NCBI GenBank assembly: GCA_964304625.1
Contig: OZ199839.1
Location: 3,195,223-3,259,222 of the forward strand
Direction of reading: 5' to 3'
Length of the DNA: 64,000 nt
Source: Kudoa neothunni
Lineage: Eukaryota > Animalia > Cnidaria
The notes under the pieces were generated by a model, which was not told the origin of the DNA, made no database searches, and saw only the letters and a program-made list of their open reading frames with translations. The position numbers were made by a program, and so were the translations under genes. Positions 19,734 to 48,139 of this stretch are shown here, one piece after another. Each line of letters begins with the position of its first letter. Position 1 is the first letter of the stretch.

Positions 19734-22700
19734 ATGTTACTTTTTTCGTTAGTAACTACACTAGTAATTTTTGTTCCTGGTAACGTTTCTATATTAATTA
19801 AAAATAGTTTTTTAATCTATCCCAACAAAATTTTTCAGATATTTATGCAAATATATCTGTAAGACGTTGCAATATTAATCACACGTATAAACCTAGCTTG
19901 AATGTATTGGATGTTTGGTTGGAGCTTACACAACCATTAAAATACGTTGAAATTGGTTGGAAGTTAGTTGACTCATTGGAAGGAACCACCGTTCGATTAT
20001 CTAGGAAAAGTCTGATAAAATGTGACACTGACAATATATGTGGCATGTCGATTTACGACGTGAACAGGCTGAGATCATATTTTTTGTTTGTTGATACAGA
20101 GGTTTGTGTATCATATGGAGCGTTGAAAATATATCGACGTGAGTTTAGTTTTGTAAATTGCGTCGAAATGAAAATTACAATATTTTAGAACCTGAAAATA
20201 ATGTTATCGATTATACAATTAACGGAGAATCGAGAATAATTTTCAAAAGTGATTTATTTAATCACAAAAAATATATTTGTCACATTTTAATCAAAAATAT
20301 TGTCTATCAATCTAATACTGAAACCAAATCTGAATCGATTTATGGTTATTGTGACGAACCATCATACCAAATTCCACCTAATGCCATTACAATTAATTTA
20401 TCAGTTCAAATGATGGATATGATTTATCCAACCGATTTAGTTATAAAAAGTGATACATAAACTCTTTTTAAGATTAATGATAATTTTTAGCCAATCATTT
20501 CAAGGAAAACTCACTTGTGTTTGATACAAAACCCACAGGAGAATTTCATATAATTTTGAATGGATTAGAAATTGAGCAAAATAACTTGTATATGATTGAA
20601 AATTACTTTACTGATCCAAAAGAACTTTATATGACTACAGAAGAAACTTTATGCTCTAAACAACCAGTTGAAGGTGATAAAATAAAGTTTACGTGCAGAT
20701 CACCTCATGGTGACTTTCTTAATTTCAAATTGGAGAACGAAAACAGCAAAACTAATTTAATGCGTTCTACAAAATTTAGTATAGAAGCTTTTTTGTTTTT
20801 GTGTATAATAATATATTTTATAGTCGATAAGAGTCAATTTTTTAATGTGATAGAAGAATTTCATCGCTTTAAAATTGTTGCCAATAGTGGCACGACCATG
20901 CAGCAAGTAGAATATGTGTTGGATGAGTTATCCGACAACAAATTGGTACGTAGATTCATTTGTAGAATAAAAAATAAAAGTGGATGTGTTGGATTGTTCA
21001 TCGACAATATGATCATTTTTGAAAAAGATTTCCTCAAGTCATATAAACTGCTCTTGTCGTATGGAAGCTCCCATTGGGAAGTAACTTCCGAATGGAACTC
21101 ATCACTGTTTAAGGTTCATTATGCTGTTGAAAAAAATAAAATGACTATTTGGTCAAATATACCTGAAGATTATCAAATCAGTTGTGTGTACACATTGGTG
21201 AGGGTTGACACTTTCTTGGATGGTTATAATAACGCTGGAACATACGACACGTACGGATCTTTATCGCATGATGGCTATAAATCGTGCAACAACTATACAA
21301 TCGATCTCTCCACGACTACGCCGAATTCGTTGCACATATATATCCCCCAAATGAATTATCTTTACACTATTAGAAATCTTTATGAAAAATTAAATTTTAA
21401 TGTGGTGAGAAGTCAAGAGGGTATAAAAATAAATACCAACTTCAACGATGAATATTGGTCTTACAAGTTTGTCAATAATGAGGAGATTCTAAATATGGAA
21501 TATATGAATCGGAATAAAATGGTAACGGCTGATACATACGTCAAATGTGATTCAAAAATTTCACTCCCTGAACCTGATATCGCCCCTACTGGACTATATC
21601 TTAAATTGGCGGTTCCTGGCAATATTTTCTATGTTGATTTATTCTACAGTATTTGATTTGGTTTTAGTGATCTGAATATTAAATTTCTTACTCATTATAA
21701 AATTAGACGATGAGAAACTAGATGCCAGTATTGATGATTCTACACCTAACATATTCAGTATCAATATCCAACTCCCTCTAGATAAAGATCTCATAAAGCA
21801 TATCGTAGTATATCAGATTGATGGAGATAGACAAAAATCGCCTTATATATGTTTCAGATGTGAAAATGATTGTTCGGACAACCTAAAGATAGAAAATAAT
21901 GTTGGCGTATTAAGCATAGGTTTGATATTTGCAAGAACTGTTTATCTAGAGATACTATTGAAGAATGATAGGACAATGAATAAAGTGCTCCACTTACGTA
22001 TGAGAATATAAGCGTTTATTATATTTGTATGGTTGGATAATTTAGCCGATATTCGTGTTAACTATGATCTCAGATGGTCTGATGATGCTTTTGATATATT
22101 GCCAATGAAAAACGTTAACCAGTATGAGTACTGCGATTTCATTATTAGCTCCAACGAGAAATCTAATAAAGATAGAAAAACTAAATTATTATATGTTGAT
22201 AAATGCAACAAAAAAGTTAGGACGCTTCGAGGACTGTATGATGAAAATCACATCTCAGTGTACAACAGAATGCGACTGCTTTTCAAAACTTCCTTCAACA
22301 TATGTATGCAATAATTATATTACTGCGATTAAACTAAGACTTAACTATTCGGGATTATTATTCTACTAATAAGTTTATATAACAGCATAACAAATGGATT
22401 CAATCCCCCCAAAATAAAGGTTTATCTATGATTCTTAGGTAAAAGCGTAAATCAATCTACAAATTTCAAAAATTTACATATATATCAATTTTAATAGAAA
22501 ATCGGTTGGGCATTGATTGCTAGGGGTTAAGACGGTTCGGTTTCGGTTCAACATTTCGGGTTTGTAATTAATTTTTCCAATTATCGATGTCAATTTTTTT
22601 TCATGAAAAAAATATGTAAAAATGTGATTGGTCGAAATTTTATTTTAATCGTTCTTTGTTTAAAAATACTCTTTAAATCCAAATTTTGAATTATTGTACA

Positions 22701-25700
22701 ATAGAATTAAATTATATATTAGTTTTTATTGTTTTAATTAATTTTATTATTTAATGTTGTTTGTTATTACCTCTAAAAACGATTATAAATATTTTAATAT
22801 TAAATTCTTTAAAACGCACTATGAAAAATTCTATAGTTCAAATTTCAATTTAGTTATTTCTATTTTCATAAATGAACACAATAGTTTCAAGTTTCGAGTG
22901 GCTCAATTTTGTTCTCAACGGGGAAATAGCACGGTTGCATAAGGTAAACATCTGTCTGCGTCAATGCTCGTAGGTCTAACGTTAGAAAGAGTTTTACAAA
23001 CCCTTTCTAAATGATCTGGCATCACACCGTGATTAATAAGATTGGTAATTTCGTTAAATGCTAACAATATTTTGTTTTGTTTGGTCTGGGAAGGTGATTT
23101 ATCAAATTGTCTAAATTTATCTCAGATTCGGAAGGTTTATAATTTTGGATTTGATCATTCAGTTCAATGAAATTAACTGCGTCTTCTAGCTCCAAATTTA
23201 TTATCTTTTGTAGAAAATATTCTTTATACAACTGTTTAAATCGATTCTTAAAAATATAAATATATCGGACCAAACGGTGCGTAGTTCAAAGAAGCATTTG
23301 ATAAATTTCATTTTTAAAATTTCTGAAATGGATCCATCAATATATGAGAAGTCCTCGATTGTATCAGTGAGTATGAGTCACATTCATTACATTTTGCTCT
23401 TTTATTAGAAAGACTAACAAAATAGCCCCAAATACCTGATACAATTCCTGTAATACTAAATACAAAATTTATTCCCTGTTAAAACACGTCATTCAAAAAT
23501 ATTTATTGCCCTTTTTCTATTTTAAAACCGCGTTTACTTATTTAAGACTGTAAGAATTAATAATAAAAGCTAATTTCTATTAATTAAAAAATAAATTTTC
23601 AAAACCGACTGTTAAACACCTAACCGATCTTAACCCCTATTGGTTACTTGATAACAAAATCGAAAAATCACGATATGTAGTTTTATGAAACAATTCTTAC
23701 ACTGTTTACACGTTTTCAAATAAAAAGCACATATTTGTAGAGATATACGAAGCATTATCCTTTATCCATTATATATATAAAACTGAGTTGTCCGCAGGGG
23801 TGTGATCCCTAAGTACGCATGAACGGAAAAAGTTTTTACATATAGATAAATATCTATGTAACTGTTAATAGTTTAAGGTAATTTAAAAATTATCTCAATT
23901 GTTATCACACTGACAAAAATTCAAAATTAATGTAGGAAATTGTGTTGTCCTCGACGCTAGGTTTCTTAAGCGGATTACGTAGTTTCAATAATAGGATTAT
24001 ATCTATCGATTCATGGCGACATTTGTCTATACTGCACTTCTGCGAGTTGTTTTGAACGTTCTTAATGGTTCACTCTTAAACTATATATCCACGAGTTCAT
24101 GATAAATTATATATCGTTTATCTATCTGTATATTTAAAGTAGATGTATCCACTTGGATGTGTGCTTAAATACATTCCGTATTTTTTGAGCTTTTAATATA
24201 TTTGGCTTTATTAGTACACTTTAAAAGTATTATAGGTGGCATTTAATATAGCAAAAATATGAAAATTTTCTAAATTAATGAAGAATTACAAACGTATGTT
24301 GTAATCGGATGGATTCAATCCTTACATATTGAAACTAGGTTCCCGAATTTCATTATAACGACTGTTAGACTTAATTTTGAACGATCCAATTTAATATATA
24401 GATTGAAATCTTACTTTATCCAGTTATTTAAATATTTTTGTTCAAATTAAGAGGCTATACAGCGGTTTTGAGGAAAGAGTGTATATAAATGTGTCGGATA
24501 GAGATATTAATTTGAGCAATATAAACTAATCATCGTAAGTTATTATCGAGTTATTCAGGTTTTTCCACTGAATAATCTCTTCAAAATGATCTCAGTTTTT
24601 TACTGTGCCCATCACAGTCGTTAAAAGTATGATATTTAAAAAAATGTACTCAATTTCTCCTATGAGCTAATCAAGAGTCTTAATTTCTTTATTTTTTGAC
24701 CGTAAATATCTATGATGAAATATTCCCAATCCCGTACGAAGCTGGGCTGTTCGCGCTAATATTTAATAAGCAATACAAATAAAATCCCTAAAATTATAAT
24801 TTTTATACGGTTATAAAAATATAAATAAATAGAAAAAAATATAACTGTTATACTATTAATTTAATAATTATTCAAATAAATAATACTTCTCGGATATTTA
24901 CATAGTCAAAAGTATACACTGGGTAATCGATGATATGCAATTTAATTAATAAAATATATTATAGTTTATACTAGCGCTAATTCTCAGCTTTGCCAGGCAC
25001 TATATGATGGAAAATTTTAACATTTAGTTTTATTTTTGAATGGAGAAATTCTACGTAATATTCAATTAAATTAGCGCGCTAAACCCTGTAAATTTTATTG
25101 TTCTATTTTAAGTGTTGTTTTTTATAGCTTGTCATTATTTTTGCAATGTGATGATTTTGGTAAATGAATTTATGCGCGCATTTTCCATTCAAATATAAAG
25201 AGGTATTGGGAGAAATTAATGAGTATTTTTAAGTTTATTTTACAAATTAGTGACAAAAAATATAATGGCCATAATTTAATGGGAAATGTAATTAACGATT
25301 ACAGTTTAGTTATTTATTAAAAAACGTCATTAAATAGCTTAAATAGTACATTCAGTTCTTTGCAAAATTTTGCGATAAAAATTAATCCTCTGATTACAAA
25401 ATTTATTATGATGGTGACTATTCGCATTCCCGCGCTGCATGCGCGGAGGATAAAAGCATTGCCTCTATTCGTGCTTTTTCTCTTGTATTAGTTGTTGCAG
25501 AAAAACGCTAATAGCCAAAAACGATAAATAATGTTTTTCGAACCATGAATATAATGATAAAAATATTTTTTTCTACCTTTTAATAATCAACGCAGTTTTT
25601 TAATTGTTTTAGTCCTCCTTTTACTTTAATGGAACGAAAATTGAAATTATATGAGCTAGAATTCTTTCCATTTGGTTGATTTATGGAAAATGTGGTTTTA

Positions 25701-28700
25701 GTCCCGTATTAATCTTTTAAATTTTGTAGGCTCTTGTATAATTCGTTGCATTGACTACCACCAAGTGTATTTAATTGATCCAATAATTCAGAACATAACT
25801 GTTTCTTGATTTTAAATGTATATTGGTCGGTAAAACATTCAAGGCAATATTTTGCGAATCAATATCGGGGGAGTTTATAGTTGTTGAAAAATTGTACAAT
25901 CACACTTGTATATATTATTTAGAAACGTAACCATTGCTGAATAAGATATAATGTGAACAAAGAACATGTTTTTTAAATTCCAAATTGACATTAATTTCAT
26001 ATTTTGAGTCTCTAATTTGATTTTATCAATAGTAAAACTGTCAAACTTTTATTATTACCTTAATATCATCAATTTTGTGCTTCATAAGAATCAGATCATT
26101 TTTTTAAAATCATCACCATGGATGGTCTCACAGTAATTGAGTGTTGAATTGACTTGGTGAATTGACGAAGATTTGGACATAAATTTTTTATCTTGTCATG
26201 CTCTTGTTCAGTCCTGTTATTGGTATTTGAACCAAATGTCAGAGCATCAAGAAGATGAAAATCAGCCCAAATATTTTTAAGATTAATCAAGTTTTTCCCC
26301 AAATATTTTGAAAATACATTGGATTGGTCGAATATATTTCATTCAAGTTGAAGTAAAATGAGTCAGCGCTTTCAGAATATATTAAATTTTTTATCAGATT
26401 TTTTTTAAATTATCAGTTGTCTTTTTTTGTTTACAAGGTAAAGCCCCTGGCGCAACTTATTAGGTTGTGGAATTCTGGTTGGTCAGACCTCTTCCATTAA
26501 CGCTTTAGGCACCGCAGGACGTAACATGAAACCCCGTCGCTTATTAAAATGCGGTAGTGTGAGACTTTAACCCGCTAAACATCCTCGTCTCAGGGCGACC
26601 ACCATCCCAAACCCTATCCCTTTAAGGACGTTGGCTCTGCGGGAACTGCAAATCACTTTGCCTTTCGATGGGTTCCGGAGATTCAAACGCCTATTCGCAT
26701 TCGCGCTCACCTCACTTTATGCAAATCTGGCTGTCAGTGCACCCCACTCCACAGCGAGCGTACACGTTAACCATAGCTCCCAAATATGGGATAGAGACTC
26801 GCCGACAAGGAAGCAGTAGTCTGACCATCGGCGGATTCGAACGCATTATCTCAAGGTTCTGAGTCCGAGAGTCACACCGATGTGCTATCTGTCCTCAGCT
26901 ACTTTTATATTATCAAATTAACAGAATCGTTTGTTGAATAAATCGTGGCCGTCTGAACTCATAACTCGCAAAACTAATATGCCGCATTAAAGATATATTC
27001 ACATAAACTTTTCATGTAATTATTATCTAACTATTTTTTATTTCTAATACGTAAAAGTTGGCATAAAATTGTTCTATGGATTAAATGACTGTAATTTTTA
27101 CGATAGATAATAATTGACGTATAGTTTCAAAAATCAACTAGAAAAATATTATTTGGCTTTGGGGCTAGTATTAATTGTTTTAAATAACTAATTTAAGAGT
27201 AAAAGCACATATAGAGGTAATGCTTTAATCCTCACTGCATACACCGAGGGAATGCAAATAGACATTATCATTTTATTAGCTGGTGTGGCAAGACCTATCC
27301 AACTATGTCATCTCGACCCTTGAATTTGTATTTTTAAATCAAGAAAATTCAAAATAAATTATTTTATAACATTGTTTTATACATGGTAAAATGCATGTTA
27401 ACAACGAATACTTTTCGACATTATTCTTTCTCGTAATCCGTTAACTTATTATATTTATATATTTCATTATTTTAATTTTTTTCTATATTTATACAAGTAG
27501 ATATCTAAATTAATAATTAACTTAGTGAAGGATGAAATAATTACTGGGATTCGCTATCATGATAATAAGATATACATACGTAACAAATACCAAGATAGAA
27601 AAAATGTCAGATGCAAAATTAACATTCAAACTACCCAGAAGATTGAGTAAACAATAATCAATCAATATTTTATGATTTATATTGATTTATTTAGGGACAA
27701 TCCGTCATGTGATAATGTAACGATTCCTATTGGTAATTACAAACTTTATACATTAGGAATATCAGCCAATGAAAATGAACAAACGTACCATATTGTTCCA
27801 TGTAGTTATATAGAATCATAGTCACAAATTTAATCTCATATAGTTCCGTTTCCTTTTATTTATGGTTACGAATTGGAAAATTCAAATTTAAAACGTTATC
27901 ATCAGAATTCCCCCATATATAGATTCGATTGTTATTCTATCAGAGGATATTATGAAAAAACGCAACTTGAACTAGTGCGAAAAACAACTAATATACCTTT
28001 GAATAATAAAAAAGATTGCGACCACATCAGCGACTATGTTAGTCTATCATTTGCAACACATGGCAAGGTGGATTGTATTCTTTTGAAATTAGAAAAAGAT
28101 CAGGAAAACACATTGGTTATTTTATGTATTTACTTAGGAATGTGTTGTAGTAATGCAGTTGTTGTTAGACCCAACGGAAAAAGATTTTATATTAAAATCT
28201 TTAGACGGTTATGTTTACTATGAGAATGTATACATTAAACGGAACACAAACTCTGTAACCCATAAATGGTACACCAAAAGAGAAGATGGTGTAATCACAG
28301 AGGTTGATCCATCGAAATTAAAGACAATCACCATGAGGAACGTGAATTATATCGCCCTTAAACCCGAACTGAATACCGATTATCAAGTGACCGTATCAAA
28401 CAATGGAATGGTTCAGTTTATACTCCACTTTTACCCCGAGAAAGAATTTGTAAGTTGTTAATACCTTTATGTGATGAATATTTTAGATTTTATCATTAAA
28501 AATTTTAGATTAAACTTAATTCTGATTAACAATACTGCTACGTATGTAATTAATAAATTTTGTCCTTCATGTAAAATTAATTGTAAGTAAATATCTAATA
28601 ATTTTATTATTAATTAAAAAATTTTAATTATTTTTTACACCCATATCAAAATCATAAACAATTACAACAATTAGGATGGCATTACGGTCACCACAATTGA

Positions 28701-31700
28701 ACAAGATAAGTTCACATCTCAAATCAATATCATCTGCAATAGCTCAAATCAGTGCTCGACCAAATATATTAAATACTTAAAGTTTAAAAATGGACGCTTT
28801 CAAGAAAATATTGAGCTAAACAAAAACTTTCATTGCAAAAACGGCGCTCATCTCACCATAACGAAAAACGTCTGTCCTATCACCTACTTCGTCCATCCAA
28901 ATGAGATAATACGACTTTGTTTGGTAGAGAATGAAGCGACAGTTTCGTGCCAAATATACAAATCTAGTAATTGCTATACTCAATTGTTTGATTTATGACT
29001 GACATTATTTATCGATTTTAAGAACATCAAATGAAATTCTTCCGATCGGTTTATTTTGGAAAAAATAAACGAGAATTTGAAATCACGTCAGACTCCGATG
29101 ATAAAACCACTTGCATCTGCACTGCTATTAATGGTCGTGAAAGAAGCCAATTATGGGATCCTTTCCAATGCAAACCGTTGCAAAAAGATTTCGATTTAGG
29201 CTGTGATGAAATAAAAACACACACCGAAATAAAAGATGGAGAGATGATTGTCAACATAGAAAACAAGGCTGAGTTTAATGGAAAGATACAACAGATCATG
29301 CCTTCAAGTTATCAAAGTAAATTCCTTTACATTTTCACTGGCATTACGCATTACAGTCGCACCAGTGTAAGGTGTGAGAGCAAGTACAGTAGGTAGCCAA
29401 TTTTTCTCAATTCTTTGAAAACAATACATACCTTCAAAATAATAAATGAGCTGTATTTTTGTTTTTATTTTAAAATAGTATCTTATTACTATAATGTCAT
29501 TGGAATTAAAATAAGGTTAAAAATAGCCAAAATCAAAATCACATGATTAACCAGTTTTTCGTAGTTTGTTTGGGCGGGTATTGTCTAACCTTTCGAGCAC
29601 CTCAAAATCGACTATACATTCGTTGTTTTTTCAATGTGTGACTAAATTTGGTCTAAAATTAGGGCATAATGATTAATACAACAAAATATCCGTCCTTTAT
29701 GAGGAGACGAAAATTAATTCTATACTGCAATTTAAAAGTCTATAAATTAACATACGCAATGCAATTTTAAAATACAATAATGAGTTATATTAGAACCTCC
29801 AATATACGTAGGTTAGAACTGTCAACAAATTCAATTATTAGACATCTGGTTTCTGGATCACCACATTAATGATAGGATTCGATTAAATGAAAGAGACCTA
29901 ACAAAACAAGGATTGCAAACATGTCTCTCGCAAGCCGCATGAGGTCCTTTAACCCTCCCGGGATGGCGCGCGAAAAAATCACATGCGTTCCGGTGTGGGA
30001 TGGGGTTCCGCGATACCTCATAAGTTCTCTATTATAATAAATTTATTGCGCAATGTAATGAAAATCACAACAAATAAAAGTTTGTGAATATCTTATTGAA
30101 TCACTTGAAATTTAATTAAACGTAAATTTTTCCGGAAAAATCTAAAAAATCCGTTAAACATTAAGATAGAAAATATGACGAAAAATTTTTTAAACTATTT
30201 ATAGATGAGTTTATACAAGCACCAGGCATTAGCCCTTCTGAGTCCACATGCCCCGAATGTTTCGGCAATCCCAAAAATGTATCAAACGTCTTTTGTGTAC
30301 TGTTGTCGTTCTCATTGTTTAAATCTGAATAATATATTTTCATTGATTTCTTCAATTAAGAAGAATCTACTAAAGGACCTGCCTTAGTAGTAACAAAATT
30401 GAATGGTTTAGTTCGGTCCCTGACTTTATCACAAAAATCTCACCTAAACCCAGATTTCAATGTTCATGCATCATTCGATTTAGACTTTTCACCGCAATCA
30501 TACTTAGATCCCGAATCACATAAAGATTCCAACGTATCATTTCACCATGACGCATCCTACACTGAGTCTTTAAACTCCATCTCACTACCCACCACTTCAC
30601 TCTCGTTAATATCAATCGTTAAGTTATCCGATTCATCCTTACGACGCATAACTCAATAAAATATTACTTAAATTATCGTAATATAAATTCTTCTTGTGTT
30701 ACTATTGAGTAAAACCATTTGATATTAACACTGATCCTCTTAAGTCTCATGATCACTCAGTGAAATTTAAAAACAACACAAAATTTGGAAATATATTACA
30801 TATGTAACATAATAATGTCATACTAAATATATTTACTCATGTTCACGAATATTCTTTACACCTTACTCAATTGGATGGATTCTAAACCATTTATATTGTG
30901 CATCCCACTAAAAAACGCATTTTCCAAAACATCCGTGTATTAAAAACTTTAACTAATACTATAAATCAATTATAAATCTCACACTTGAAGATTAGTTGAG
31001 CCCTTTAACGTGTCACATTGTCATTTATGGTGCAAAACTAAAAATAATCTGAAATGGGGTTCGGGAGGATTAATGTCAGAAGGACAGCTTTCCATCTTAT
31101 GTGTATAATATGAGGTACTATACCTAGGTTTGAAACGAGAGAAATTGTATAATTCCTAGTCGCTGAATTCATTTTCTTTTTTATTACTTTCAAGTTAAAT
31201 ACAGAAAGAAAAAGGTCAGCAAATGTAAGTAACGTATAAATATTACGAATTCCTCATAAAATAAAGTCCAACACACCCATGATAATTAACGAGACACAAT
31301 AACTCTAAATTTTCTCAGTTTTTTCTACGTTTTTAAATTATAAAATGTTTTTATCGCCATTCAAAATTTCTTTTTAATAAAAAAGTTATTATTCAACCGA
31401 AACGCCCTAAAAATAAACTTTTCGAGTTCTACACAAATACATCTAGTTTATATGCTCAACTTTTATAAACCTTTAAATTAGACCTATGGATGTGTTGATA
31501 GATTTTCTAGTTTAAAAATTTTTCTTAGTAAAATTTAAATTTTAAGTGCTTTATGTAATTACCGGAGAAGTTATTAAAAAAATGATAATAACCATATCAA
31601 ATATTCTTAATTTCAAACATTTATTACAATATTGAAACGTGATAAAAATATATTTGTTTTCTAAGATTTTTATTTTGAGTTATTGTTTGTTAATTAAAAT

Positions 31701-34700: not shown

Positions 34701-37700
34701 AATGACTCGAATTTTAGGTTTGCATTGAAAAGTTGCTTGATTCGGAAATTATCCAAAAAGCATTTCTATTAGATGCTCCAAGTAAATTAAGTGATGCAAC
34801 TAAGTACAGGTGCGTTTCACCTCACCGAAAAATCTTCAAATCATGTCTTGTCCATTTCGTTGTTTAATCCTCTCGATCCCAATGTATACTTAAATATATA
34901 TGATTGAATTTTGAATCCCCAGGACGTTTTGCTTCTGGAATTCCAACTAAACTAGTTTTAAATATTTTAATTACTGTTATCTTTTTTTATTTTAATTTTA
35001 ATAATTTTGAATGAGTTAAATAGGAAAATATTAATCAAATGGTTCTAAATCGTGTCGGGTCTTAAGATAGGAGAATTAATCTTGCATTTGTGTAAAATTT
35101 TTCTAATGCACGCTCATGAAAAAAAAACTTTTTATAATACTATTTAATTAAAAATATGTATGTGATTAATTAAAACGAAATATCCATGCAAACTTGCTTA
35201 TATATTTAAATATATATTGGGGCCGAGTGTAATAGATTTGGTCACATCCTAAGGGATCACGACGTTCAACCTGAAAATCTAAATCAGGCTCTACATCATA
35301 AGAAGTCATTTATTTATCAGAGGTGAATATTTTTAATCATATCACAATCTCACAAGATGGTTATACCACAAAGTTAATTGACAACAACGACGATCCCAGA
35401 TAATAGGAATACATTTCTGATTATAAATAGTGCCCCTTTTTGAGATAAAGGTATCGAACTTACAACACTCTATTTCAAGAGATTTTTTAGCACTTCATTG
35501 CTTAATCTGATTCTCTGAAGGATTAATACTCACTCTGTTTTTTACATCGGGTATGAAGGAACCTATGTAATAGAGATAGAAAAATACATGGATATTGTTA
35601 AATTAACCCCCCAAGTCAGCCCTAGCCAACCAAAACTTCATTCGCACTCCCTTTTTAATGATAGAACGAAATCCACGCCCCCTCTGTAATCGATAAGGTG
35701 TATCTGGCTCAAAATTTCTCAAAAATTACTTTCTAATGTTGTCAAACCTCGTACCTGACAAACCCATAGTTCGTAATCCCTAGGGATGCAGGAACCACTG
35801 TTCTAAGTCACATGAAAATTTACAACTTCCAAGTAAAATTAAGGTGTAAATTCACCCAATTTTTTCAACCAAATTATTTGAAACTAATAGGTAACTATTT
35901 CAGTATAATGAAAAAATTTTGGTCGAGTAATTTTTGAGGAATTGACGAGAAAACATTGTTGAACATACATACACATGCGTGGGTTGCTTGGATATTCTGG
36001 CGGTCAGATAAATTTACGTGAATCAATTAATGTTCAAACTTATATGTATATGTGTACAAAAAATGGTTAATAATTTGGAAATTTAAATACTCACAAAAAT
36101 AAACCAAATAAACAGGCTAATATGCGTATTATTTATTACAACAGTTAAGACATAATTTCGATAATTTTTACGACCAAAATTAGCACAAATTCCACACTTT
36201 AAGGAAGTCTTCTTGTCATTTTTTTCTCACACAGTCGGAATCTACCTTGAACGTTCGTTTCCCGTTCTGCGATAGAACTAATATCTAATGTAGGATTGAA
36301 TAACTTGACTTTTTCTCAATTTTTTTTGTTTACAAGGTAAAACCCCCGGCCCAACTTATTAGGTTGTGGAATTCTGGTTGGCCAGACCTCTTCCATTAAC
36401 GCTTTAGGCACCGCAGGATATAATATGAAACCCCGTCGCTCATCTTTATGCGGTAGTGTGGGACTTTAACCCGCTAAACATCCTCGTCTCAGGGCGGCCA
36501 CCACCCCAAATCCTATCCCTTTAAAGAAGTTGGCTCTGTGAGGGCTGCAAATCACTTTGCCTTTCGATGGGTTCCGGAGATTCAAACTCCTATTCACGCT
36601 CACCCCATTCCACATCGAGCGTACACTTTAACCACAGCTCCCAAACATGGGATAGAGACCCACCGACCGACACGGAAGCATAATCTGATCAACGGCGGAT
36701 TTAAACCCATTATCTCAAGGTTTTGAGTCCGAATGTCACACCGATATGCTATGTGTCCTCGGCAATACTTTTTCCCAATGACAATGGACATGTCATTTGC
36801 TCAGCCGACGTTTTCGAGAAATCTCTCCATCTAAGATTTACACCGATAACCTTGCGTTGGTGTCAACTCCCCATTTTATCGTATTATACCGCAAGAAGAT
36901 GTTGGGTCGAAAAAACGCTTCAGCTGCAGTATGAGTGTTACTTGAAGATGAACAAGGCATATATACAGGTTTGTTCTTCCTCGGTAAACACCTTAAAATC
37001 ATCTTTTTGCTATTAAATACCAAAAGAGATGAATATAAGGTTCGTCTTCTTGAGGTCGTAGATAGAATGGAATATCACGTTTGTTTTCACGCATGGTTCC
37101 AATAATAATTGTAAGCTTTCTACTTAACGATTCATCAACTAACTCACTTGACGTAAAAAAATTGTAACAAAAAACGTTCCGCCCAGAGTTTATGAATGAT
37201 TCTGTAAACGGCAAAACAATGTTTTTCCCAACATTAACAGTTTTTGTGTCATTCTGAGACTGCTTATCCAAATAGATGGACAAATTGCAAACATATATTG
37301 GTCTAGGATCAACCAATAAAAACCATAATCCCATACTTGGTGGGCTTCATTGGCATGTACCGCTTGAATTCGCAACGATCTCTAAATGCAACAAATTGCT
37401 CATCTAAGCACAGATCTTAATATGGTTAAAATCTACGATTAAGTAAATCAACCCAAATGTTTCAAAGATCGCGGAAATAACAAAATTTGTCATTAACTTC
37501 TCTCAAATCCTTGGTTTCTGAGTTTTCAATGTGAAATGCCTGTATAATTTGTCGAAATTTTGTTAACGAAAAGATATCACGGTATATTTTTCGGTCTTCT
37601 TCAGATTTAAATAATTCTTTAACAGGTTCTTGATTGTTTCTATGTATGCTCATTAAAATTAAGCATCCGATTGGGTCATTAATTTTAGTTTCTTCTAATT

Positions 37701-40700
37701 TTGTCGAAGCATGACCAAAAAGTTTTTCTCCGTATTGATTTGTAAATTTGGAAATCAATTTGTGCATATCTTGATTATATAACACCTTGAAAATATCATC
37801 CGCTTCTATGCCATTTTGAGATATGTAAGGAGAAATTCCTCGGCGATTATTTATTATATTTTCAACTGCCCCCAGCACTCTATTTTTATCAATTAATGAG
37901 TCTAATGGCACATTAGTGGTATAATCTTCATTATTTGATGATGGTATATCATCAAATAAGAAATCATCAATAGAAGAATCAGTATCAGAACAACTACCTC
38001 AGCAGTCAGAAGAACTTATTACGTTTTGCGCGTGCGCGTTGAATTAATTGAATAAATTTTGTCAATATGAGGGTTATTTAACGATTAGAACTATCTAAAA
38101 AATTCCAGTTATGTTACTTACTTTATTAATAACAATTTTAGCAAATAAACCTTAGGGTGTATAATCACCCAAATTTTACTCGGAGGCTGTTTTAGCATTA
38201 TCTTAGGTCATAATAAAAAAAAATTTTATTTTATTTTCGCTTATTGTGTACTATATACATATGGAGAATTAGCAGACACATGAATTATATTTGTTGCATT
38301 TATAATGAGAACAATTACCATCAATAATCGTTCGGGAAGGAAATACACCCCATTTTACTTGGAGGCTAATGGATGAGGATTGTACGAATGCCGAGGGTTC
38401 CGTATTATTGGAAAAACCATTTAAATGTTAGAACTTTAGTTATTTGTTGTTCTGTTAGAACATTTTATTTTAATGAATCTAATAAACTAAGGTATTCACG
38501 ATATAATAAATCCTATTTTTCATTAAATGTTGCCACGTTTGATAGGAAATAATTCTTTTAATCTATTATCAATCAAAGTATAAAATTGGCGATAAATTGT
38601 TTGTATATTGGATGCTATTTTTAAAAAGAATAATTTAGAGGAATATTCCATAATTTTTATGAATTTTGGGATTGATCTTATGGTTTTCATTTAGTTAAAG
38701 AGGATCCAGTAATCCTGTTTGAGGAAAGAGATATACATAAGCAAGGTCAATACACGGTTGTGTTAAAAATGCAAGCTGATGAAACTAACAAAGAATTCCT
38801 CAAATCAAATATTCTAATACGGGGACAGAATATTGTTGACGACTGTTATATTATAGACAATCCTATATACAATGACTTTTTACGTTTTTGGATAAAATCC
38901 GATTGTTTGGTCGAAGAAACTTCAATAATAGAATATTCAATCGGAAATGGAATTTATTCGAAAATAAAAAAAAAACGTATATAATATTTATAATATATTT
39001 ACTATATTAATTAAATTTTATTTAGGATACCATAACGCTTACGGACGAGTAGAAGTTGATGGCAACAATATCAAATTCTATATCATACTCTCCAGTTATC
39101 TCGATTCTATCCGATTAAAAAATATTATAGCGTATAATTTATTTTTGAAGCAGACGATATTAAACATTAATGAAGGAGGTTTTATCATATGTAGAAGTTT
39201 AGTGTGTAAGTACAATTATCGAGCAACTGGCCTCGAAACATCACTTGAACATACTTTAATAAGAATATCTTCAGATGAACTAAAAGATATAGAAATATAT
39301 CACCGAACAAGTAAATGAGTTATTATAATTACAATTTTACCATTTATTTAGATTTTAACGAAGCATTTTATTACCAAAATGCTAAATTTATGGATGATCA
39401 TGGTATAAAACTGTATTTGGATGGCTACACGGTTCTACCAGATTCGCATATAATCTTAAACAATGATTCCAGTATAATTGTTCCTTACCAGATTCCTGTC
39501 AAATTTATTGATCAAAAGTTTTATTGTGTGGTTAATCATGATGCGACTGGAAGTGGAAAAAGCTTTACATTTCCAAAATCGACTATAACGAAACCTCTAA
39601 TAACGAATGAAAGTATTTTTATATTATAACACAATATTATACGCGATTTTAAAAATGTTACACAATTAAAAAAATATATCAATTTTTTCTACTTCATTGA
39701 TTTTTAACTATAACTACAAATTTTTTTATTATTTATAGAGAGGTATAGCTATGAATTGGAATATTTTTGGCTCAACCAAAAACTAAGTATTCTGTTGAAA
39801 ATAGCTTCCAAAAAAGAAATACCCACGTTAGATATCAAATATTCAATTTATGCGAATAATGAAATTCCAATTGAACCATATGTCAATCAAATCACTGTTA
39901 CGCCTGGAAATAGTGAATACACCTTTAAGATTGAAGGTCTCGATACTCGGGTTAATTACTTGATAGAGTTGTCCTCTCCCCAACTTGAAGATTCTGATCC
40001 ATACATTATAAAAAATGGTACAAAAAATACCTCCTGATATAAACACCAATTTGTAAATCTTCATTAAATTAATATATATTTTAGAAGCGTGTGACTTTGA
40101 AGTTACAACGCAACGTGAATCAAATGATGAAATTTTAATAGCAATAAGGAAAAAATCAAATTCTGGAAATTTAGAAATTTCCTATAGACTTTTTGAATCA
40201 GACTCTGATAATAAAGAAGCTCTTAATGAACAAAATAAGCAGATAACCTGCACTGAACACATATGCAGTTTCAAAACACGTCCTATAACTCCCGCCAAAA
40301 ATCACAATATCGTTCTAAAAATTCCGCCATGCAATGATGATTTTAATTTAGTCATTCAAAAAGGTATTATAGAATGTGTTTTCCAAAAAAAACATTTAAC
40401 CTATTATTAGTCAAAAGTGATTATGTTTTCTATTACAGTTATAGAAAAGATGGCGACTTAAGGGTCACACTTGTTATAGAATTAAGACTAAACCTGCCAT
40501 ATGAAATTATTATGGTTAACTGGAGTCTTAAGAAAAGTGAAGATTCACCAATAATAAAAAATTCAATAAAAGATCTACAAATATCGAAAGAATATGGGTA
40601 TTTTAAATTTGAAATACAAGGGGTAGAACGTAATAACCCATATTATATCGATATTACGTCTGAAGATCTCGTGGAAAAAACCAACCAAGTATACATCCCA

Positions 40701-43700
40701 ACATGTAAAATTTTTTAAAACTAAATGTTAATATTATAACCGACCACTTGAAATATTTAGTAAAAACCGATTATGAACAAAGAGTGGAATGGGTTAATAC
40801 TCAAATATCAATTATTTTGAGTTTTGAGGAATCTGTTGGAGCTTGTAGCGCGGAAGTTGAATGCATAACATTAGAAAAAATAGAAGAACAATTTATTGAA
40901 ACAAATACTCAATTGTTTCACGTTGATTTCAAGTGTGTTGAAACTGTTTGCAAAATTATGTTAGATGGAATAGACAGAAATGCTTATCACAGAATTAAAA
41001 TGGATTCTAATATATTAAAAGATAAAGGACCAGTTTTAATTGGCAAAGGTATTTACTCTAATTACATAAAAATTAAAATATATGCTATAGGTATAAGTAT
41101 ATTCCAAATCGAATATGAATACGATAAAGATAATGCCATTATTATCAATTATACATTAGAAGAAGATTTTGATGAAATTTTGTTGAAATGGGATTTACAT
41201 GATACTCAAGGCAACCAGGTGAAGAGTTCGAACGAAGCATTAGAACAGATATCGTGTAAAGAGAAATTATGCCAAATGACAACGTTGAGACAACTGGATC
41301 ACTCTAAAGCTTATCAATTTACGTTCGAGTCTGCTCAGTTAAGTGGTAAGAATGTGTTGACAATAGAAAGTAATTACCTTATGTCTATTCAATGAGTATA
41401 CCCTCTGAAATTAATTTCATCCTTTCTAAGATCGGAAATTTTATGTTACTTTCCTGATGGGTGAATATTTCTGGTTTAAATATATTTATTATTAAAAATT
41501 ATAAACGACGTAAAAAATTTAATCCAACGAGAATTTTTATTATTCTGTCAATTATATCCTTATTAATACCTTGTTAATTTGTATAATTTTTCAAAACATT
41601 AAAAATTGAGAAATATTTTTAAAACAAATTTTAACGATGATCCATTTTAGAATATTATGTAAATTCGTCTTTTACTAATACAGTCTCTCTACGTACAGCA
41701 AATATTTTTATTATTTATATACCACAAAACAGGGGCGCACAAATTCCGGCCTCAATGAGGTTTTTAGTGGTCCGCGATCAACTCTAATTAAGTTCAAATT
41801 AATGGTATACGTGTCCTGTTCAAAAAGTATCGAGATTTTTTAAATATACAAAAAATATCCATAATCATAATCAACACACCTTTTTGACGATTTTTCCAAT
41901 TTTGGAAACATTAAGAAAAGTCTGTTTTATTTCAGTAATCGATGAAAATCTTCTCCCTTTTAAATAAAAATTTATCTTTGGGGACAAATAAGTCACAGGG
42001 CGCCGAATCTGGAGAGTATGGTGGATTCTGGAGTTGATCAATATCAAAGTTAAATAAAAATCGTTGAATCTTAGTGGATGTATCAGCAGGCGTGTTATCG
42101 TAATGTAGAATCCAATTACCGTTGTTCCACATTTCAGGTCTCTATCGCCGTAATTTTTTTCACGTTTTAAAACATTTTTTCTCTTCAAATGATGAATTTA
42201 AATGATAAAACTAAACCGTAATCCTTTATCAATAATTCTACTAACAGAAAAATTACGAGGAACTGAAAATAATTTAATAACACCATTTTTCAGCTCTGGC
42301 TTATAAACTCAAACTAGATTGATAATATTCTTTAACTTTTCGTTTGATTTTAACTATTCTAGGTTTAATAAATTAATAAATTACGCGTTGACATATTAAT
42401 TTAGAAACGAAAAGTTTTTAAATTAAGTTATTTCAGAGAGTATGCTCAAAATATAATTTCATACGTTCTCTTAAATAATTCATTATAATCTATTATAATG
42501 TTCGAATATATTATCTCAAATTATTAATTCATTTTTCAATCATTTATAGAAAGACATAGCTATGCATTTAAATATTTTTGGAACAACAACATACTGAATG
42601 TTCGGGTGAAAGTATCTTCTGATGGAGAAATACACTCTTTAACCATCAAATACACAATTTATGGAAACAATCAAACTCCAAATGAGCTACAAAGCAGTAA
42701 CATCAATGTTGAATGTAAAAACAATGAATGCGCCTTCGAGGTGGAAAATCTGGACTTTGAGATAGATCACACGATAAAGTTGTTTTCTATGCGACTTGAA
42801 GATAACGTTCCACACAGTATAAAGAACGGTAATCAAATAATTTTAAAAAATAAAATCAATATTTGATAATGAAACTAATATATATTTAGCTTGTGAATCT
42901 AAGGTCACACAAACACGTGAATCCAATCATGATGTTACAATAAATATAAAGAAAGATCCAAATGTTGTAGATTTAAGAGCAAGCTATTCAGTTACGGAAG
43001 TAGGATCTGGGGATAAAGAAATTATCGCAGAACAAAATAAACAGATAATCTGCATTGAAAATGAATGTAATTTCAAAACACCCCCTATAACCCCTACCAA
43101 AAACTTTAATATTGTTCTAACATTACCGCCATGCAGTAGAAAGTTTAATTTGGTCGTTTCACAAGGTATTATCGAATTTTTCTTTCAACAAAGAATTTAA
43201 TATATTTTTAGTCAATAGTGAATATACTCTCACTTACGATTATATAAAAGAAACCGACTCAACAGTTAAAATTGTGGTAGAATTAAAACTAAACATACCA
43301 TATGAAATTATTAGGACCAATTGGAGTTTAAAAAGCAATGGAGGTTCGGAAACAATAAAGAATTTAGTAGAAACTCTAAAAATAATTAAAGAAAAGAAAC
43401 TGTTTATATTTGAAATACAAAATGTAAAGCGTAATAACCGTTATGATATCGAAATTAGGTCCAATGACCTAGTAGAAAAAACCAGCCAAATTGTCATCCC
43501 ACAGTGTAAACATTTTTTAACAAAATGTTAATGGTATTACTGATTATTTTATATATTTAGTAATAAGCAATTATCAAATATCCATGACATGGGTTAATGC
43601 TCAAGTTTCAATCACTTTAGTCTTTGAAGAAGCTGTGGAAAGGTGTAGAACAAAAATTGAGAGCAAAACAGTGGAAAAAACATCAAGAAAAGTTTCTGAT

Positions 43701-46700
43701 ACTAACGTAGAGTTGTTTGATGTTGAGTTTAATTGTGCCGACAAAGTTTGCAAAACTTCGTTAGAAGGGTTAGACAGATATGTTGATCACAGCATTAAAG
43801 TGGTGTCTGGTCTATTTAAAGATCCAGATCCAGTTCTCGTTGAAGGAGGTATTTATTCGACTGGTTTCAATAATAAAATGAACGTTTTAGACTCGTGCGC
43901 ATTCCAAATCGAATATAAACACAATGAAGATAAGATCACAAGGGTTATTTTTAAATTAGAAGAAGAATTTGATAAAATTTTGTTGAAATGGTATTTACTT
44001 GATACTCAAGACAAGCAGGTGAAGAGTTCGAACGACATATTTGAACAGATATCGTGTGATAATAAAGTATGCCAAATGGAGACCTTGGGAGAGCTGGACC
44101 AATTTAAAAATTATAAATTCATGTACGAATCTTTTCAACTAACTGGTGAGAGAATGTTGAAGATAGAAGGTAATAAACTTAAACCACTTCAATAGATGAG
44201 TTAAGAATAACTATTATTTATTATTATCGATTATGAATTCAATTAATAATTGATTTCATCCATCCTTATATCAAAAATATGAATACTCCTTGATTGATAC
44301 TTAATTATGGCTGTTATTATATGTATTACTAACTTCACTCACCAACTTGCATTTATATTGTTTTGTCTATTTGGTCTTCATTAATAAATTTTTAATTTTC
44401 ATTAATTTTCAATTCACATAAAACTGAGAAATATTTTAAATTAAATCCATATTCTATTACTAAAATATCTATGTGGACATTAAATATTTTTATTAAATAT
44501 GTTTTCTAAGTGGAATGACGATGATGTTTGTACGTAATTTTGTTGATGGTCCCAGGGGTTTACGTATTATCTATCGGTCACTTACTGTATTTTATCTTAT
44601 TTTCAATATATTAATTTAATCGTTCAAATCTATATAGTATATGAAGATTACAAACTTTTTAAAATGTAATCACGTTACTTAAAACTTTTAAAAATCGTCT
44701 TGGCGAATTACATTTAAATTATTGATTAATTAAATTTAATAGGTTTAAAAATTGAGTCCAATAACAGAGATTTAGGTAAAATATAATAATTCCGCATTCT
44801 ATCTCTAGGATTTGTCAAATCCGTCATTTTGAAGTTCTTTAAAATACTCCCAGCTGATACCATATCTAAAAATGGAACTAAACATGTTTAAATATTTAAA
44901 AAAATAGTGAATAAGGATCACTTACATCAAATTCGAATCTTTTAGCTGGTTTCGAGTTAATTTTCCCACGATTTTAAAGGTTAATTAATTTTCAAAATTT
45001 CATTTTATTGTCCTTTGTTCAAAAATATTTATATTACTTATTTCAATTCGGAAAAATTTTTCGTTCATTAAAAATGCAATGGTTCAGAAAGATAACCACG
45101 TCATGCTTTAAAAGCGTAAGTTGCTCTTAGTACAGTACCTCATCTTCGAAGTCATTGTTAGTTTAAACCTCATTTTATTTTTGAACGATTTGTTTAGTAA
45201 TTGTAAGATTTTTTGAATTTGTCGAAAGAAAGTGATTAATGTTTCTTTATTTTAAATTCTCTATAATTAAAAAATTCCAGTAATGTTTTAGGATCGTCAA
45301 TTATTTGTAATGATCTATTACTTTAATATCACCTAGGCCTATTTCTGTACTGGTTTCTGGTGTTGTGTCGAGTACCAAAAGTTAATTGAGCTCAACGATT
45401 GTACGGCAGCATTTTCCATCTGGGAGTGAAAATTAAGGATTTGGAGGGGATAGATTGGATCATGACTGGAAATAATTTTTGAGAAATTTTTATAAATTGT
45501 TGATTTTTCAATATGTAGATGAAAAAACCTTAATGTATACATCGTTTTTTTCTTAGTTGAATTAATGCTCATTTTTCCTTTTAATATGATGCAGGAATAT
45601 TTTACGATACGCGTTTAATTCAAAATATTGATGAATTAAATTTTTATTTGATTAACTTAGAAATGATCCTAATATTTAAACGTTAAAAAGTAAAAAATAA
45701 AAAGATAATTTATTTTGTAAACAAATTTAAAAATACTCAAATTTTTATTTATCTACGTCTTATCATATATAGAAGTGGATATGGTAGTGTATATAGAGGG
45801 GTGCGGATTTCATTTTCTCGTCAAAAGGAGGAGCAAGTCCGATTTGAATTGGGATGCGGTGTTCTATATGCTCCAATGTATAATTAAAATCATTTCTTTT
45901 TAATTTATCTCAAATTGATAAATAACTTTTTTTATTTCTATTATGAACCTGGATTGTTAATTTTAAAATTATGAATTAAGTAAATAACGCGTTTTTAATG
46001 AAACATAAGGTCGCGGGATTAAGAATCATTAATTTTTTGGAAGCAAATTAAAACAATAAAATTTACTATTCCCCAATTTTTTAAATAAAAATATTAATGC
46101 TTTTAAAATATTAATTTCATCTGAGTGAAGTGGATTTTTCATACATTGAAATTAAATTTTAACGCAACCCCTAGTTAACTGGGAGGCAATTTTAAAGGAT
46201 TCGAAAGAATTGGATACCAAAATGGAATTACAAACTGATGAACCATTGGTATGATTAACTGAAATTCTCAGGATTTGAATAATGGGGAAATTTAGAATAC
46301 AGAGTTGTTTATAAAAGCTTGGGATGTGGTTGTGTATCAAAAAAATGAAACTAGTAATTATATCATAAATACATATTATTGCTTATTTAAAAATTAAGCG
46401 ACGAAAGATATTCCCGAAACTCAACCTACCACAGAAGAAGATGACACGTAATTAACTTTTCGAAATATATTTTTGAATGTTAACTTTGAAGGTTTTTAAA
46501 ACAAATCAATCTACTCGATAAAAACATCATGAATGTTGGTGATAATCAAGATGTGCAAACAGTTAATATAAAAATGAAGACATTCACTTCGACCCAAGCA
46601 TCGGAATCGTTATATTTTTCAAAACCGTTAGATGACAAGGATATAATGGATATTGTTGAAAATTCGGAAGAAATAGACAAACCCAAAGAGACTCTGCAAT

Positions 46701-48139
46701 CTACCTATGTAAGCTTAGATTTTTCTGCAACCGATTCCTCAGCGGAAAAAGAATCTGCAAGCAAAATTGTGCTAGCTGTGACTAAAAACAAACAAATAAG
46801 TACCCAAGTCGAAAAGTCAAATGTTATTGCGGGTGATGTGCTCGTGGTTAAAATATCAAACAGCTTAAGCAAAAAGTTAAATATAACATTCAGCCAAATT
46901 GTAAAAGTGGATCCTAACAGGAGGAATTTCAGATGTTGCACCTTACATAGTATAATCAATAAATATTCATTAAATAAATAATTTATATTTATAGGTAAAA
47001 AGCTCACTTGGGAGACAAGTTATTGCTCCATATTGAGAGAGGTTACCTTGTCGAATACACTTACAAATTACACATGTACGTGTAACCACACAACGAGCTA
47101 TGCAATTATTTTCGATGTTTTCGATCAGGATTCCTCTGCAAATAAATATTATCAACACGAAGTATCGTTAATATTAACATTGATTTCCCTACTTTTCCTC
47201 GTCATTACAATAATTTGTATTTTGACGTCAAAGTAATTTGAAAAATATTCTTTATATGGATCGATTTAAATATTTTGTTGACAGAAATATTTTCAAAATG
47301 AGATCATTGGCCCAATTGTGGATGTGTGTCTCTATCTTCATGTTTCATCTTTCATTTATCTTTGGGAATATATTCAACAATGTTCAAAGTTCTTGTTTTA
47401 ATGTTGCAGTTTTTCTACATTATGCCCTTATGAGTCAATACTTTTCTTTATTTTTAAATTCGTTCTTACTGTTTAAAAATCTTGTCCTCACGATGAAAAA
47501 AATAAGCTCAATAATTATGAATATAATTGCCTTTTTGATTATAGGTAAAAATTTATATTTATGTAATTTTGTAATGTTGTTATAGGGATTCCTCTGGCCA
47601 TCGTAATGCTCTGCTGGAAATTTTATCGCAAATTTTACGTAAAAGATAAACAGTATTTTTTTTTCGTGATAACTAAACAATTTTTATCTGAACTATATTA
47701 TAGTTGTATACCGCATGGGCCCTTAAAACTGGCAACAATAACTATTCCTGGTGCGGCGATATTATTTTTCAATTTGATAGTATTTGCGCTCGTTTTGAAG
47801 ACGATATTCAGATCCGAATGCACAAAAAAGAAGAAAACCTCTATAAAACAGCGTGCAAAACAATTAATGTTCTTGTTTACTTTGCTAGGTCTTCCTATGC
47901 TTCTTCAATTGTTGTCTTCGTTTGTTAAGAGTGATTTTATTATATTGGTTTCCAATATGATAAACACTTCGATTGGAATTATCTTATTTTTCATTCTTAT
48001 CGTTGGCAACAATGAGATGAGAAAGCATATTGCCTCATCATTCAGATCACGAACCACCACCAAAAAGTATCTAATGTCAAGTAGCAACCAAAAATCCGGC
48101 ACAAGAATGATGTCATTTTCAACAAAAAATGTTTCATGA
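19734..48139 (+). CDS. Giant multi-exon adhesion GPCR, copy B: signal peptide, ~30 FN3/Ig-like ~95-aa modules, GAIN/GPS, 7TM
   Basis: ATG at 19734 gives signal peptide MLLFSLVTTLVIFVP|DIYA after splicing out 19780-19838. Exon clusters at ~19839-22303, 27526-29316, 32577-33524, 38695-41370, 42550-44169 and 45773-48139 join in frame through GT-AG introns, and every long intron between clusters is phase 1. The gene ends in a GPS motif (WETSYC...CTCNHTTSYAIIF) and seven hydrophobic helices, with TGA at 48139. Joining all clusters into one transcript is inferred from phase compatibility and a single signal peptide/single 7TM. Confidence 0.72.
22521..23639 (-). mobile_element. Internally deleted hAT transposon
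   Basis: TIRs taggggttaaga(t)cggtt, degenerate 8-bp TSD ttgattgc/ttggttac, and minus-strand NVRPTSIDADRC resembling the hAT dimerisation motif PxTSxxxERxFS. Confidence 0.75.
23765..24759 (+). mobile_element. Non-autonomous Helitron
   Basis: Starts a|TCcattatatatataaaac and ends with subterminal GC hairpin cccgtacgaagctggg plus CTAA|t. Confidence 0.65.
24971..25000 (-). mobile_element. Helitron 3' terminus on the minus strand
   Basis: Reverse complement reads cctggcaaagctgagaattagcgCTAG|t, the same terminal architecture as the other Helitron ends. Confidence 0.45.
25408..27271 (-). mobile_element. Decayed Mutator-like (MULE) element with nested SINE
   Basis: Imperfect ~70-80 bp TIRs (25408-25480 vs 27200-27271). 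Minus ORF 26096-26302 has W....FGSNTNNRTEQEHDKIK, matching the MULE TNNxxExxH catalytic-E region. Confidence 0.7.
26422..26894 (-). mobile_element. tRNA-derived SINE, copy 1
   Basis: Minus-strand head has a Pol III A box (TAGCACATCGG) and B box (GTTCGAATCC), with an A-rich tail. Homologous to 36321-36766 and 59469-59780. Confidence 0.85.
29953..31069 (-). mobile_element. piggyBac deletion derivative
   Basis: TTAA-ccctcccg ... cgggagga-TTAA ends, with a decayed acidic N-terminal transposase-like frame on the minus strand (~30160-30650). Confidence 0.7.
35830..38250 (-). mobile_element. Decayed piggyBac transposase relic
   Basis: Minus-strand fragments LDEQFVAFRDRCEFKRYMPMKPTKYG, GRNVFCYNFFTS, GTMRENKRDIP and YNTIKWGVDT. 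Ends not resolved. Confidence 0.85.
36321..36766 (-). mobile_element. tRNA-derived SINE, copy 2 (inserted in a piggyBac relic)
   Basis: Same family. 13-bp TSD actttttc(t/c)caat at 36308-36320 and 36767-36779. Confidence 0.88.
38253..42148 (+). repeat. Segmental duplication block 1, copy B
   Basis: Matches 1226-5158 and ends in a truncated mariner. Confidence 0.95.
41807..42148 (-). mobile_element. Truncated copy of the same mariner (3' end only)
   Basis: One TIR plus PPYSPDSAPCD. Same insertion site as 4817, so the insertion predates the duplication. Confidence 0.9.

Follow-up and report, generated by a model that had tools for sequence, protein, structure and literature searches.

Giant ectodomains built as chains of beta-sandwich domains before the GAIN domain and the seven-transmembrane (7TM) region are familiar among adhesion G protein-coupled receptors (GPCRs) from ADGRV1 (VLGR1), with its tandem Calx-beta repeats, and from the CELSR proteins, with their tandem cadherin repeats. 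Long arrays of Ig-like and FN3-like domains occur in polycystin-1 and the sea-urchin REJ proteins. A GAIN domain is present in the latter group (PMC13197933), and FN3 has been listed among the modules of adhesion GPCRs in sponge (PMC4302439) and in filastereans and other holozoans (PMC12716839). Here we analyse a stretch of 64,000 nucleotides (the window; C2:3195223-3259222) from the genome of the myxozoan Kudoa neothunni, in which positions 19734-48139 are read, on comparative evidence, as one gene for an adhesion GPCR of 3,266 residues with 29 ectodomain modules. A sequence-only reading of the window had started from the premise that adhesion GPCR ectodomains do not use FN3. The premise fails on the listings just cited; because FN3 with an adhesion GPCR is known from sponges and unicellular holozoans, the combination has precedent. 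The novelty lies in the scale, in the modules without assignment and in the expansion of the family in a gene-poor parasite.

With adhesion GPCRs in general (GAIN/GPS plus 7tm_2) the predicted protein shares the signal peptide, the long modular ectodomain, the GPS, the Stachel-like peptide and the secretin-type 7TM, while it differs in having His-Thr/Thr rather than His-Leu/Thr at the GPS and in having no Pfam-recognisable ectodomain module; its similarity to the vertebrate subfamilies (E 0.002) is too weak for placement. ADGRV1 and CELSR have in common with it the giant ectodomain and the long beta-sandwich chain before the 7TM (with a putative GAIN here), but its modules are FN3/Ig-like with a C-x4/5-C hairpin and give no Calx-beta, cadherin, EGF, LamG or EPTP match, and it belongs to a multigene family whereas ADGRV1 and CELSR are single conserved genes. 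The sponge and holozoan receptors likewise use FN3 as an ectodomain module; they were found by Pfam fn3, whereas the present modules have no fn3 match and no other module type appears across 2,700 aa. No report of an array this long was found among the FN3 adhesion GPCRs, which were compared by description rather than by sequence. Polycystin-1 and REJ also place long Ig/FN3-like arrays before GAIN/GPS (GAIN being putative here), but they continue into an 11-transmembrane channel with PLAT, whereas only 300 aa of 7tm_2 type follow the GPS in the window protein.

Gene model and single-gene evidence

The exon model was built by hand and checked against paralogue conservation, with all introns being GT-AG. 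The 37 exons between 19734 and 48139 give 9,801 coding bases that read through as a single frame of 3,266 aa up to the sole stop at 48137-48139. The introns have a median of 49.5 nt, with 31 of the 36 in the range 41-225 nt and the other five of 1.2-5.2 kb, and nearly all the ectodomain exon junctions are in phase 1. Exons 2-29 encode the 29 modules of 76-100 aa each (~93 aa), mostly as phase-1 exons of 258-300 nt, and no further strong transmembrane (TM) segment precedes the GPS. Public collections were queried with single exons, and the joined protein was used for the frame check and for comparison with fetched loci. The features are as follows, where A0, B1, B2 and C denote paralogues in the same genome.

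19734..19779, + strand: exon 1, with the start codon and a putative signal peptide (15 aa, hydrophobic); start and donor align in B1, B2 and C
19839..22303, + strand: exons 2-7, modules 1-8; exon 2 in the CxxxxC repeat class
20824-21648, + strand: exon 5, three modules modelled as tandem beta-sandwiches; block present in all family members
22304..27525, + strand: intron of 5,222 nt with repeats; ~205 nt in paralogue C
27526..29316, + strand: exons 8-13, modules 9-13, from the gene model and paralogue comparison
27526-27646 and 27695-27801, + strand: module 9, split over exons 8 and 9
27844-28125, 28169-28449, 28675-28966 and 29023-29316, + strand: modules 10-13
29317..32576, + strand: intron of 3,260 nt; ~47 nt in paralogue C
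32577..33524, + strand: exons 14-16, modules 14-16; exon 16 a borderline member of the repeat class
33525..38694, + strand: intron of 5,170 nt with a piggyBac-like remnant; ~64 nt in the L029 homologue, ~445 nt in paralogue C
38695..41369, + strand: exons 17-24, modules 17-24, the last five exons (20-24) forming the first copy of a five-module cassette
41091-41369, + strand: exon 24, modelled Ig/FN3-like sandwich, pLDDT 90.9
42550..44169, + strand: exons 25-29, second copy of the cassette, in DNA 70% identical to exons 20-24, not in the upstream copy
46175..46949 (46175-46248, 46296-46353, 46399-46447, 46492-46949), + strand: exons 30-33, putative GAIN of ~213 aa, preceding the GPS
46995..47232, + strand: exon 34, GPS with predicted His-Thr/Thr cleavage after residue 2966, Stachel-like TSYAIIF, TM1
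47285..48139, + strand: exons 35-37, TM2-TM7 (secretin/adhesion type), then a short tail rich in Ser, Thr and Lys
1667..14690, + strand: 3' half of A0, the tandem upstream paralogue with 24 modules, which starts ~14.6 kb before the window

On this comparative evidence the region from 19734 to 48139 is one real gene. The same exon order is seen in the tandem upstream A0, in B1 and B2 (both on C1) and in C, and where introns are shrunken in homologues they keep their GT and AG. The ratio of nonsynonymous to synonymous divergence (dN/dS) against the diverged paralogues is 0.26-0.48 for the pooled ectodomain (B1 0.47, B2 0.47, C 0.26) and lower for the GPS-7TM exons (B1 0.31, B2 0.32, C 0.10); in single exons dN is below dS, save in exons 14 and 23, which have similar values of both. 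It had been claimed that the many short open reading frames splice into one frame from a signal peptide to GPS and 7TM and form a single gene, and both claims are supported by the stop-free 37-exon model, the collinear order and the collapse of the introns in homologues. Four of the five long junctions that had been proposed, 22303>27526, 29316>32577, 33524>38695 and 41370>42550 (41369 in our model), are retained, while 44169>45773 is replaced by 44169>46175: in B1, B2 and C the conservation after module 29 resumes at exon 46175, and in L028 the last module is followed by the equivalent of that exon across an intron of ~35 nt. Three RNA runs gave 0 reads on 40400-46390, which is no test of splicing because the species label of the runs is probably that of the host.

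Several candidates were rejected in the course of modelling. The exon at 45773 lies in a segment not conserved in B1, B2 and C; an intron of 22-25 nt near 28126 and the acceptors 28487/28508 were ruled out by paralogue conservation; and an automated splice search, in place of which the manual model was used, called extra exons inside the long introns. As to the contents of these introns, transposon remnants, by eye mariner/Tc1-like, Merlin/IS1595-like and piggyBac-like, are present in both receptor genes at 4945-5738 (-), 7375-8229 (+), 10321-11927 (+) and 37002-37998 (-). A dispersed repeat of ~480 nt with 82-92% identity occurs in the window at 26422-26906, 36321-36772 and 59462-59775, and also in other fetched loci.

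Receptor core and ectodomain modules

The identity as an adhesion GPCR, also proposed from the sequence before, is supported by the secretin-type 7TM, by the GPS before TM1 and by the long modular N-terminus with its putative signal peptide. Exon 34 matches the Pfam GPS (PF01825) at 25.8 bits (cut-off 22.5; E 1.5e-5) directly before TM1, and the W, the four Cys and the His of the GPS are invariant in six homologues. The GPS-TM1 profile matches adhesion GPCR structures only, the best being ADGRL3 at E 0.002, and the nearest structures by sequence are ADGRL3 and ADGRF1. Pfam 7tm_2 on single exons matches weakly (E 0.11 and 0.17), exon 37 scores 0.94 against the Atlas 7tm_2 clusters with 191-196 shared features, and the hydropathy of the last 280 aa is compatible with seven segments. 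The putative GAIN consists of ~250 aa at the expected place; its L028 homologue gives a weak long match to ADGRL3 (E 0.028), and exon 33 alone gives no PDB sequence match by profile.

All six aligned homologues have His-Thr/Thr-Ser-Tyr-Ala at the GPS. Cleavage into fragments of 2,966 and 300 residues may occur: the consensus is matched by His at P-2 and by Thr at P+1, though not by Thr at P-1. The Stachel-like TSYAIIF fits loosely the described TxFxxLM, and many adhesion GPCRs are uncleaved (PMC13197933).

For the modules, an alignment of 38 rows, containing those of the exon-2 type and of the exon-20-to-29 type, was fed to AlphaFold for exon 24. The resulting model (pLDDT 90.9) has eight strand elements, and its structural neighbours are Ig-like sandwiches with Z of 7-8.1, many of them FN3 (gp130, LIFR, tenascin, NCAM, fibronectin and CD45). 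The model of exon 5 (pLDDT 75) consists of three tandem sandwiches, which Foldseek matches to IFNAR1, Tie2 FN3 and fibronectin with E values between 1e-5 and 2e-4. In the models a beta-sandwich fold is thus shown for these four modules, in agreement with the earlier call of FN3/Ig-like modules, and since exons 5 and 24 lie towards the two ends of the ectodomain, sandwich chains are predicted at both. The FN3 domains of cytokine receptors, Tie2, tenascin and fibronectin are among the best structural neighbours, and the L-x5-Y strand motif of 11 modules recalls the FN3 tyrosine corner; FN3 proper differs in that the identity is only ~10%, the Z of 7-8 is tied with that of bacterial Ig-like domains, and the modules have eight strand elements (in exon 24) and a third-strand Trp. 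Homology to FN3 proper is therefore not shown, and by modelled fold the modules are called Ig/FN3-like.

How far the modules are related to each other is a separate matter. By profile-profile comparison exon 2 and exons 20-29 (11 modules) are linked with scores up to 57 and probability up to 97%. Exons 16 and 18 lie at the border (score 31, the highest reversed-profile score being 28.6), and the remaining 16 modules do not rise above the reversed-profile control. The L-x5-Y motif is found in 11/11 of the linked modules and 1/16 of the unlinked (1.7 by chance); only the negative result is fair as a test, because the motif was derived from the linked modules. The shared pattern described in the sequence-only reading thus holds for exon 2 and exons 20-29, with exons 16 and 18 at the border, and does not extend to the other 16 modules. 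Over the 29 modules, 11 are related by sequence, two are borderline, three more are joined by fold class and 13 by neither, so that the common descent of the array from "one divergent FN3-like repeat" was overstated.

With ten modules scanned, Pfam fn3 gave no match at E up to 10; in the exons scanned no Pfam-recognisable ectodomain module, and specifically no Calx-beta, cadherin, EGF, LamG or EPTP, was found; no Calx-beta or cadherin repeats, EPTP or EGF/LamG are among the top 50 fold matches; the module profile found nothing below E 1 among PDB sequences; and the Atlas feature search of the modules gave no assignment, the best being 0.86 for a mannosidase Ig. The per-module beta-periodicity signal is too weak for use.

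The receptor family

In the 40.26-Mb assembly searched (4 contigs, ~29% GC), exon 34 finds 15 loci at 41-100% identity, the same 15 that are found by Pfam GPS, and all 115 module-profile matches and all 23 exon-5-profile matches lie on the same strand upstream of these GPS loci. These matches show, at the level of sequence, an expanded family of about 15 loci, ten of the paralogues being known from search tables only. The loci span 10-39 kb with ~24-33 modules per receptor: A0 has 24, the window gene 29 through the five-exon duplication and B2 ~33, the length varying mostly near the membrane, and modules of the exon-24 type number 1, 2 and 10, respectively (with one assembly gap among those of B2). 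Broken-looking copies are A0 at exon 12, paralogue C and the locus at C2:11.72 Mb, in which low-coverage errors are possible. The Pfam 7tm_2 scan gives no match anywhere in the genome, so that adhesion GPCRs cannot be counted by it. It is noted that rhodopsin-family 7tm_1 has 18 matches at ~16 places, the giant-receptor family being comparable in size.

Comparing A0 with the window gene, most exons are 98-100% identical, with divergent tracts. Two such tracts are window 1997-2281 versus 39026-39310 and L003:3592-3873 versus window 27844-28125, with 49% and 73% aa identity, and no donor copy for such tracts was found in the assembly. In exon 12 of A0 (L003 ~4585, the equivalent of window 28836) an extra A in a homopolymer shifts the frame, which is either real or a sequencing error. 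In B1 (L010:107-5552) exons 4-11 appear twice with a 200-N assembly gap between, which may be an assembly artefact.

Beyond this genome, the profile search of 1.84 billion protein representatives gives six module-bearing fragments from three assemblies (ERZ28624939, ERZ4740346 and SRR31175926), none of them named, and no named homologue was found for the family; this supports the lineage-restricted family that had been suggested. In these assemblies the homologues lie in DNA of 17-28% GC with exon order and short introns kept, one fragment runs from the modules through GAIN-GPS-7TM, and the distal modules are 53-55% identical to the ERZ28624939 homologue; we infer that the fragments come from other myxozoans. 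Two loci of SRR31175926 (L027 and L028; 17-20% GC) carry the same receptor architecture. Two bacterial profile matches (P0123 and P0127) cover only 25-36 profile positions of repeats and were treated as chance.

Separately from the receptors, the sole 18S rDNA match in the assembly (L021, G000:C2:5424779-5428248) ends at model position ~1158; the DNA beyond it is AT-rich and shows an apparent C2H2 zinc-finger frame, which may reflect insertion of an R2/R8-like element into the 18S. By HSP70 the genome falls among the animals, with no close relative found.

Proposed function and alternatives

The best explanation, to which we give a probability of roughly 70%, is an intact myxozoan gene for a 3,266-aa adhesion GPCR of a family of ~15 loci, acting as a surface rod that adheres and signals. 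The protein would project from the cell as a rod, its 29 Ig/FN3-like domains reaching ~100 nm if extended, at ~3.5 nm per domain. The distal modules, i.e., the exon 2 and exon 5 blocks kept in every family member, would bind a host or self ligand, while the proximal modules, with their number varied by exon duplication, would set the reach. On analogy with other adhesion GPCRs, binding or tension on the ectodomain would be passed through GAIN and the Stachel-like peptide to the 7TM, so that the cell would both adhere and report contact or force. A long-reach adhesion or force sensor is the most likely function, where we infer function, ligand, stage and partner (host or parasite) alike.

Several points weigh against this explanation. 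The splice model is a prediction from DNA comparison; the GAIN is putative; P-1 is Thr in 6/6 aligned homologues as against Leu/Ile in the consensus (PMC13197933); the structural similarity of exon 24 is at common-fold level, with FN3 tied with bacterial Ig-like domains; 13 modules have neither sequence nor fold assignment; and the adhesion could be either host-directed or between parasite cells. A stronger version, that giant adhesion GPCRs assembled from a single FN3-derived, exon-encoded module are a class evolved within the myxozoans and serve as main host-recognition receptors of the parasite, with paralogues of different reach and different fish or annelid ligands and a signal controlling attachment or invasion, is doubtful.

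Among the alternatives, it could be proposed that the receptors are mainly variant surface antigens, with mosaic ectodomains for immune evasion and signalling being secondary. The ~15 copies, the ectodomain evolving faster than the 7TM, and the divergent tracts in exons 10 and 17-24 of tandem copies otherwise 98-100% identical would be in line with this proposal. Yet within the tracts the dN and dS estimates, from small counts, are nearly the same (exon 18: 0.33 versus 0.36), the lack of a donor copy and the pattern fit incomplete gene conversion, dN/dS against the diverged paralogues is below 1, and the GPS and Stachel-like residues are invariant, which makes the proposal unlikely. Similarly unlikely is a non-cleaved receptor or structural tether, in which His-Thr/Thr stays unprocessed and the protein is a long linker between parasite cells (e.g., in spore or plasmodium assembly), like ADGRV1/CELSR, with little host contact. 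The P-1 residue, off the consensus in every homologue, speaks for it, and very long tandem-sandwich adhesion GPCRs do link a cell's own structures or its neighbours; but His P-2 and Thr P+1 are invariant, the Stachel-like peptide fits loosely, and the 15 diverging paralogues would be left unexplained.

It is improbable that the window copy represents either an uncollapsed haplotype of the upstream A0 or an unexpressed duplicate of it of recent origin. The identity to A0 is 99% over 3.2, 6.4 and 5.0 kb, flanks included, the low-coverage assembly has haplotypic duplication (PMC12239612), and frameshifts are present, one of one base in A0 exon 12 and several in paralogue C. By contrast, the two copies are joined without an assembly gap, their intron contents and the five-exon cassette set them apart, the window copy is unbroken over its 9,801 coding bases, and a DNA-run contig (which may be of the source sample) is identical over 42114-45765; the family result is independent of this question. 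Finally, that the clusters are separate genes, with a shorter adhesion GPCR starting near 38695 and secreted module proteins encoded before it, is very improbable, since, although the clusters are 3-5 kb apart with transposon remnants between and no transcript bridges them, a start and a signal peptide are found in cluster 1 alone, every cluster ends with a phase-1 donor and the next opens with the matching acceptor, the gaps are introns of ~47-205 nt in paralogue C and of 64 nt on L029, and the order is collinear in five copies.

The preferred explanation, of an adhering and signalling receptor family, bears on the biology of a reduced parasite. The assembly of Kudoa neothunni, from yellowfin tuna, is of 40.2 Mb (N50 12.0 Mb, three chromosomes, 30.4% GC), with intron length 49 and 5,316 predicted proteins of median 348 aa (Weber, Paulini and Blaxter, PMC12239612), and the main text of that paper does not mention GPCRs, receptors or adhesion. 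Our search of the literature on myxozoans and adhesion GPCRs found no paper and no description of the family. Long micro-intron genes with unassigned modules can escape detection, as is seen from the six fragments in 1.84 billion protein representatives. With only ~5,300 predicted proteins, the genome nevertheless gives ~15 loci of 10-39 kb to giant receptors, and an expansion of this kind in so reduced a genome suggests that their role at the parasite surface is under strong selection. As no myxozoan adhesion GPCR was found in the literature, the family provides concrete candidates for host sensing and attachment.

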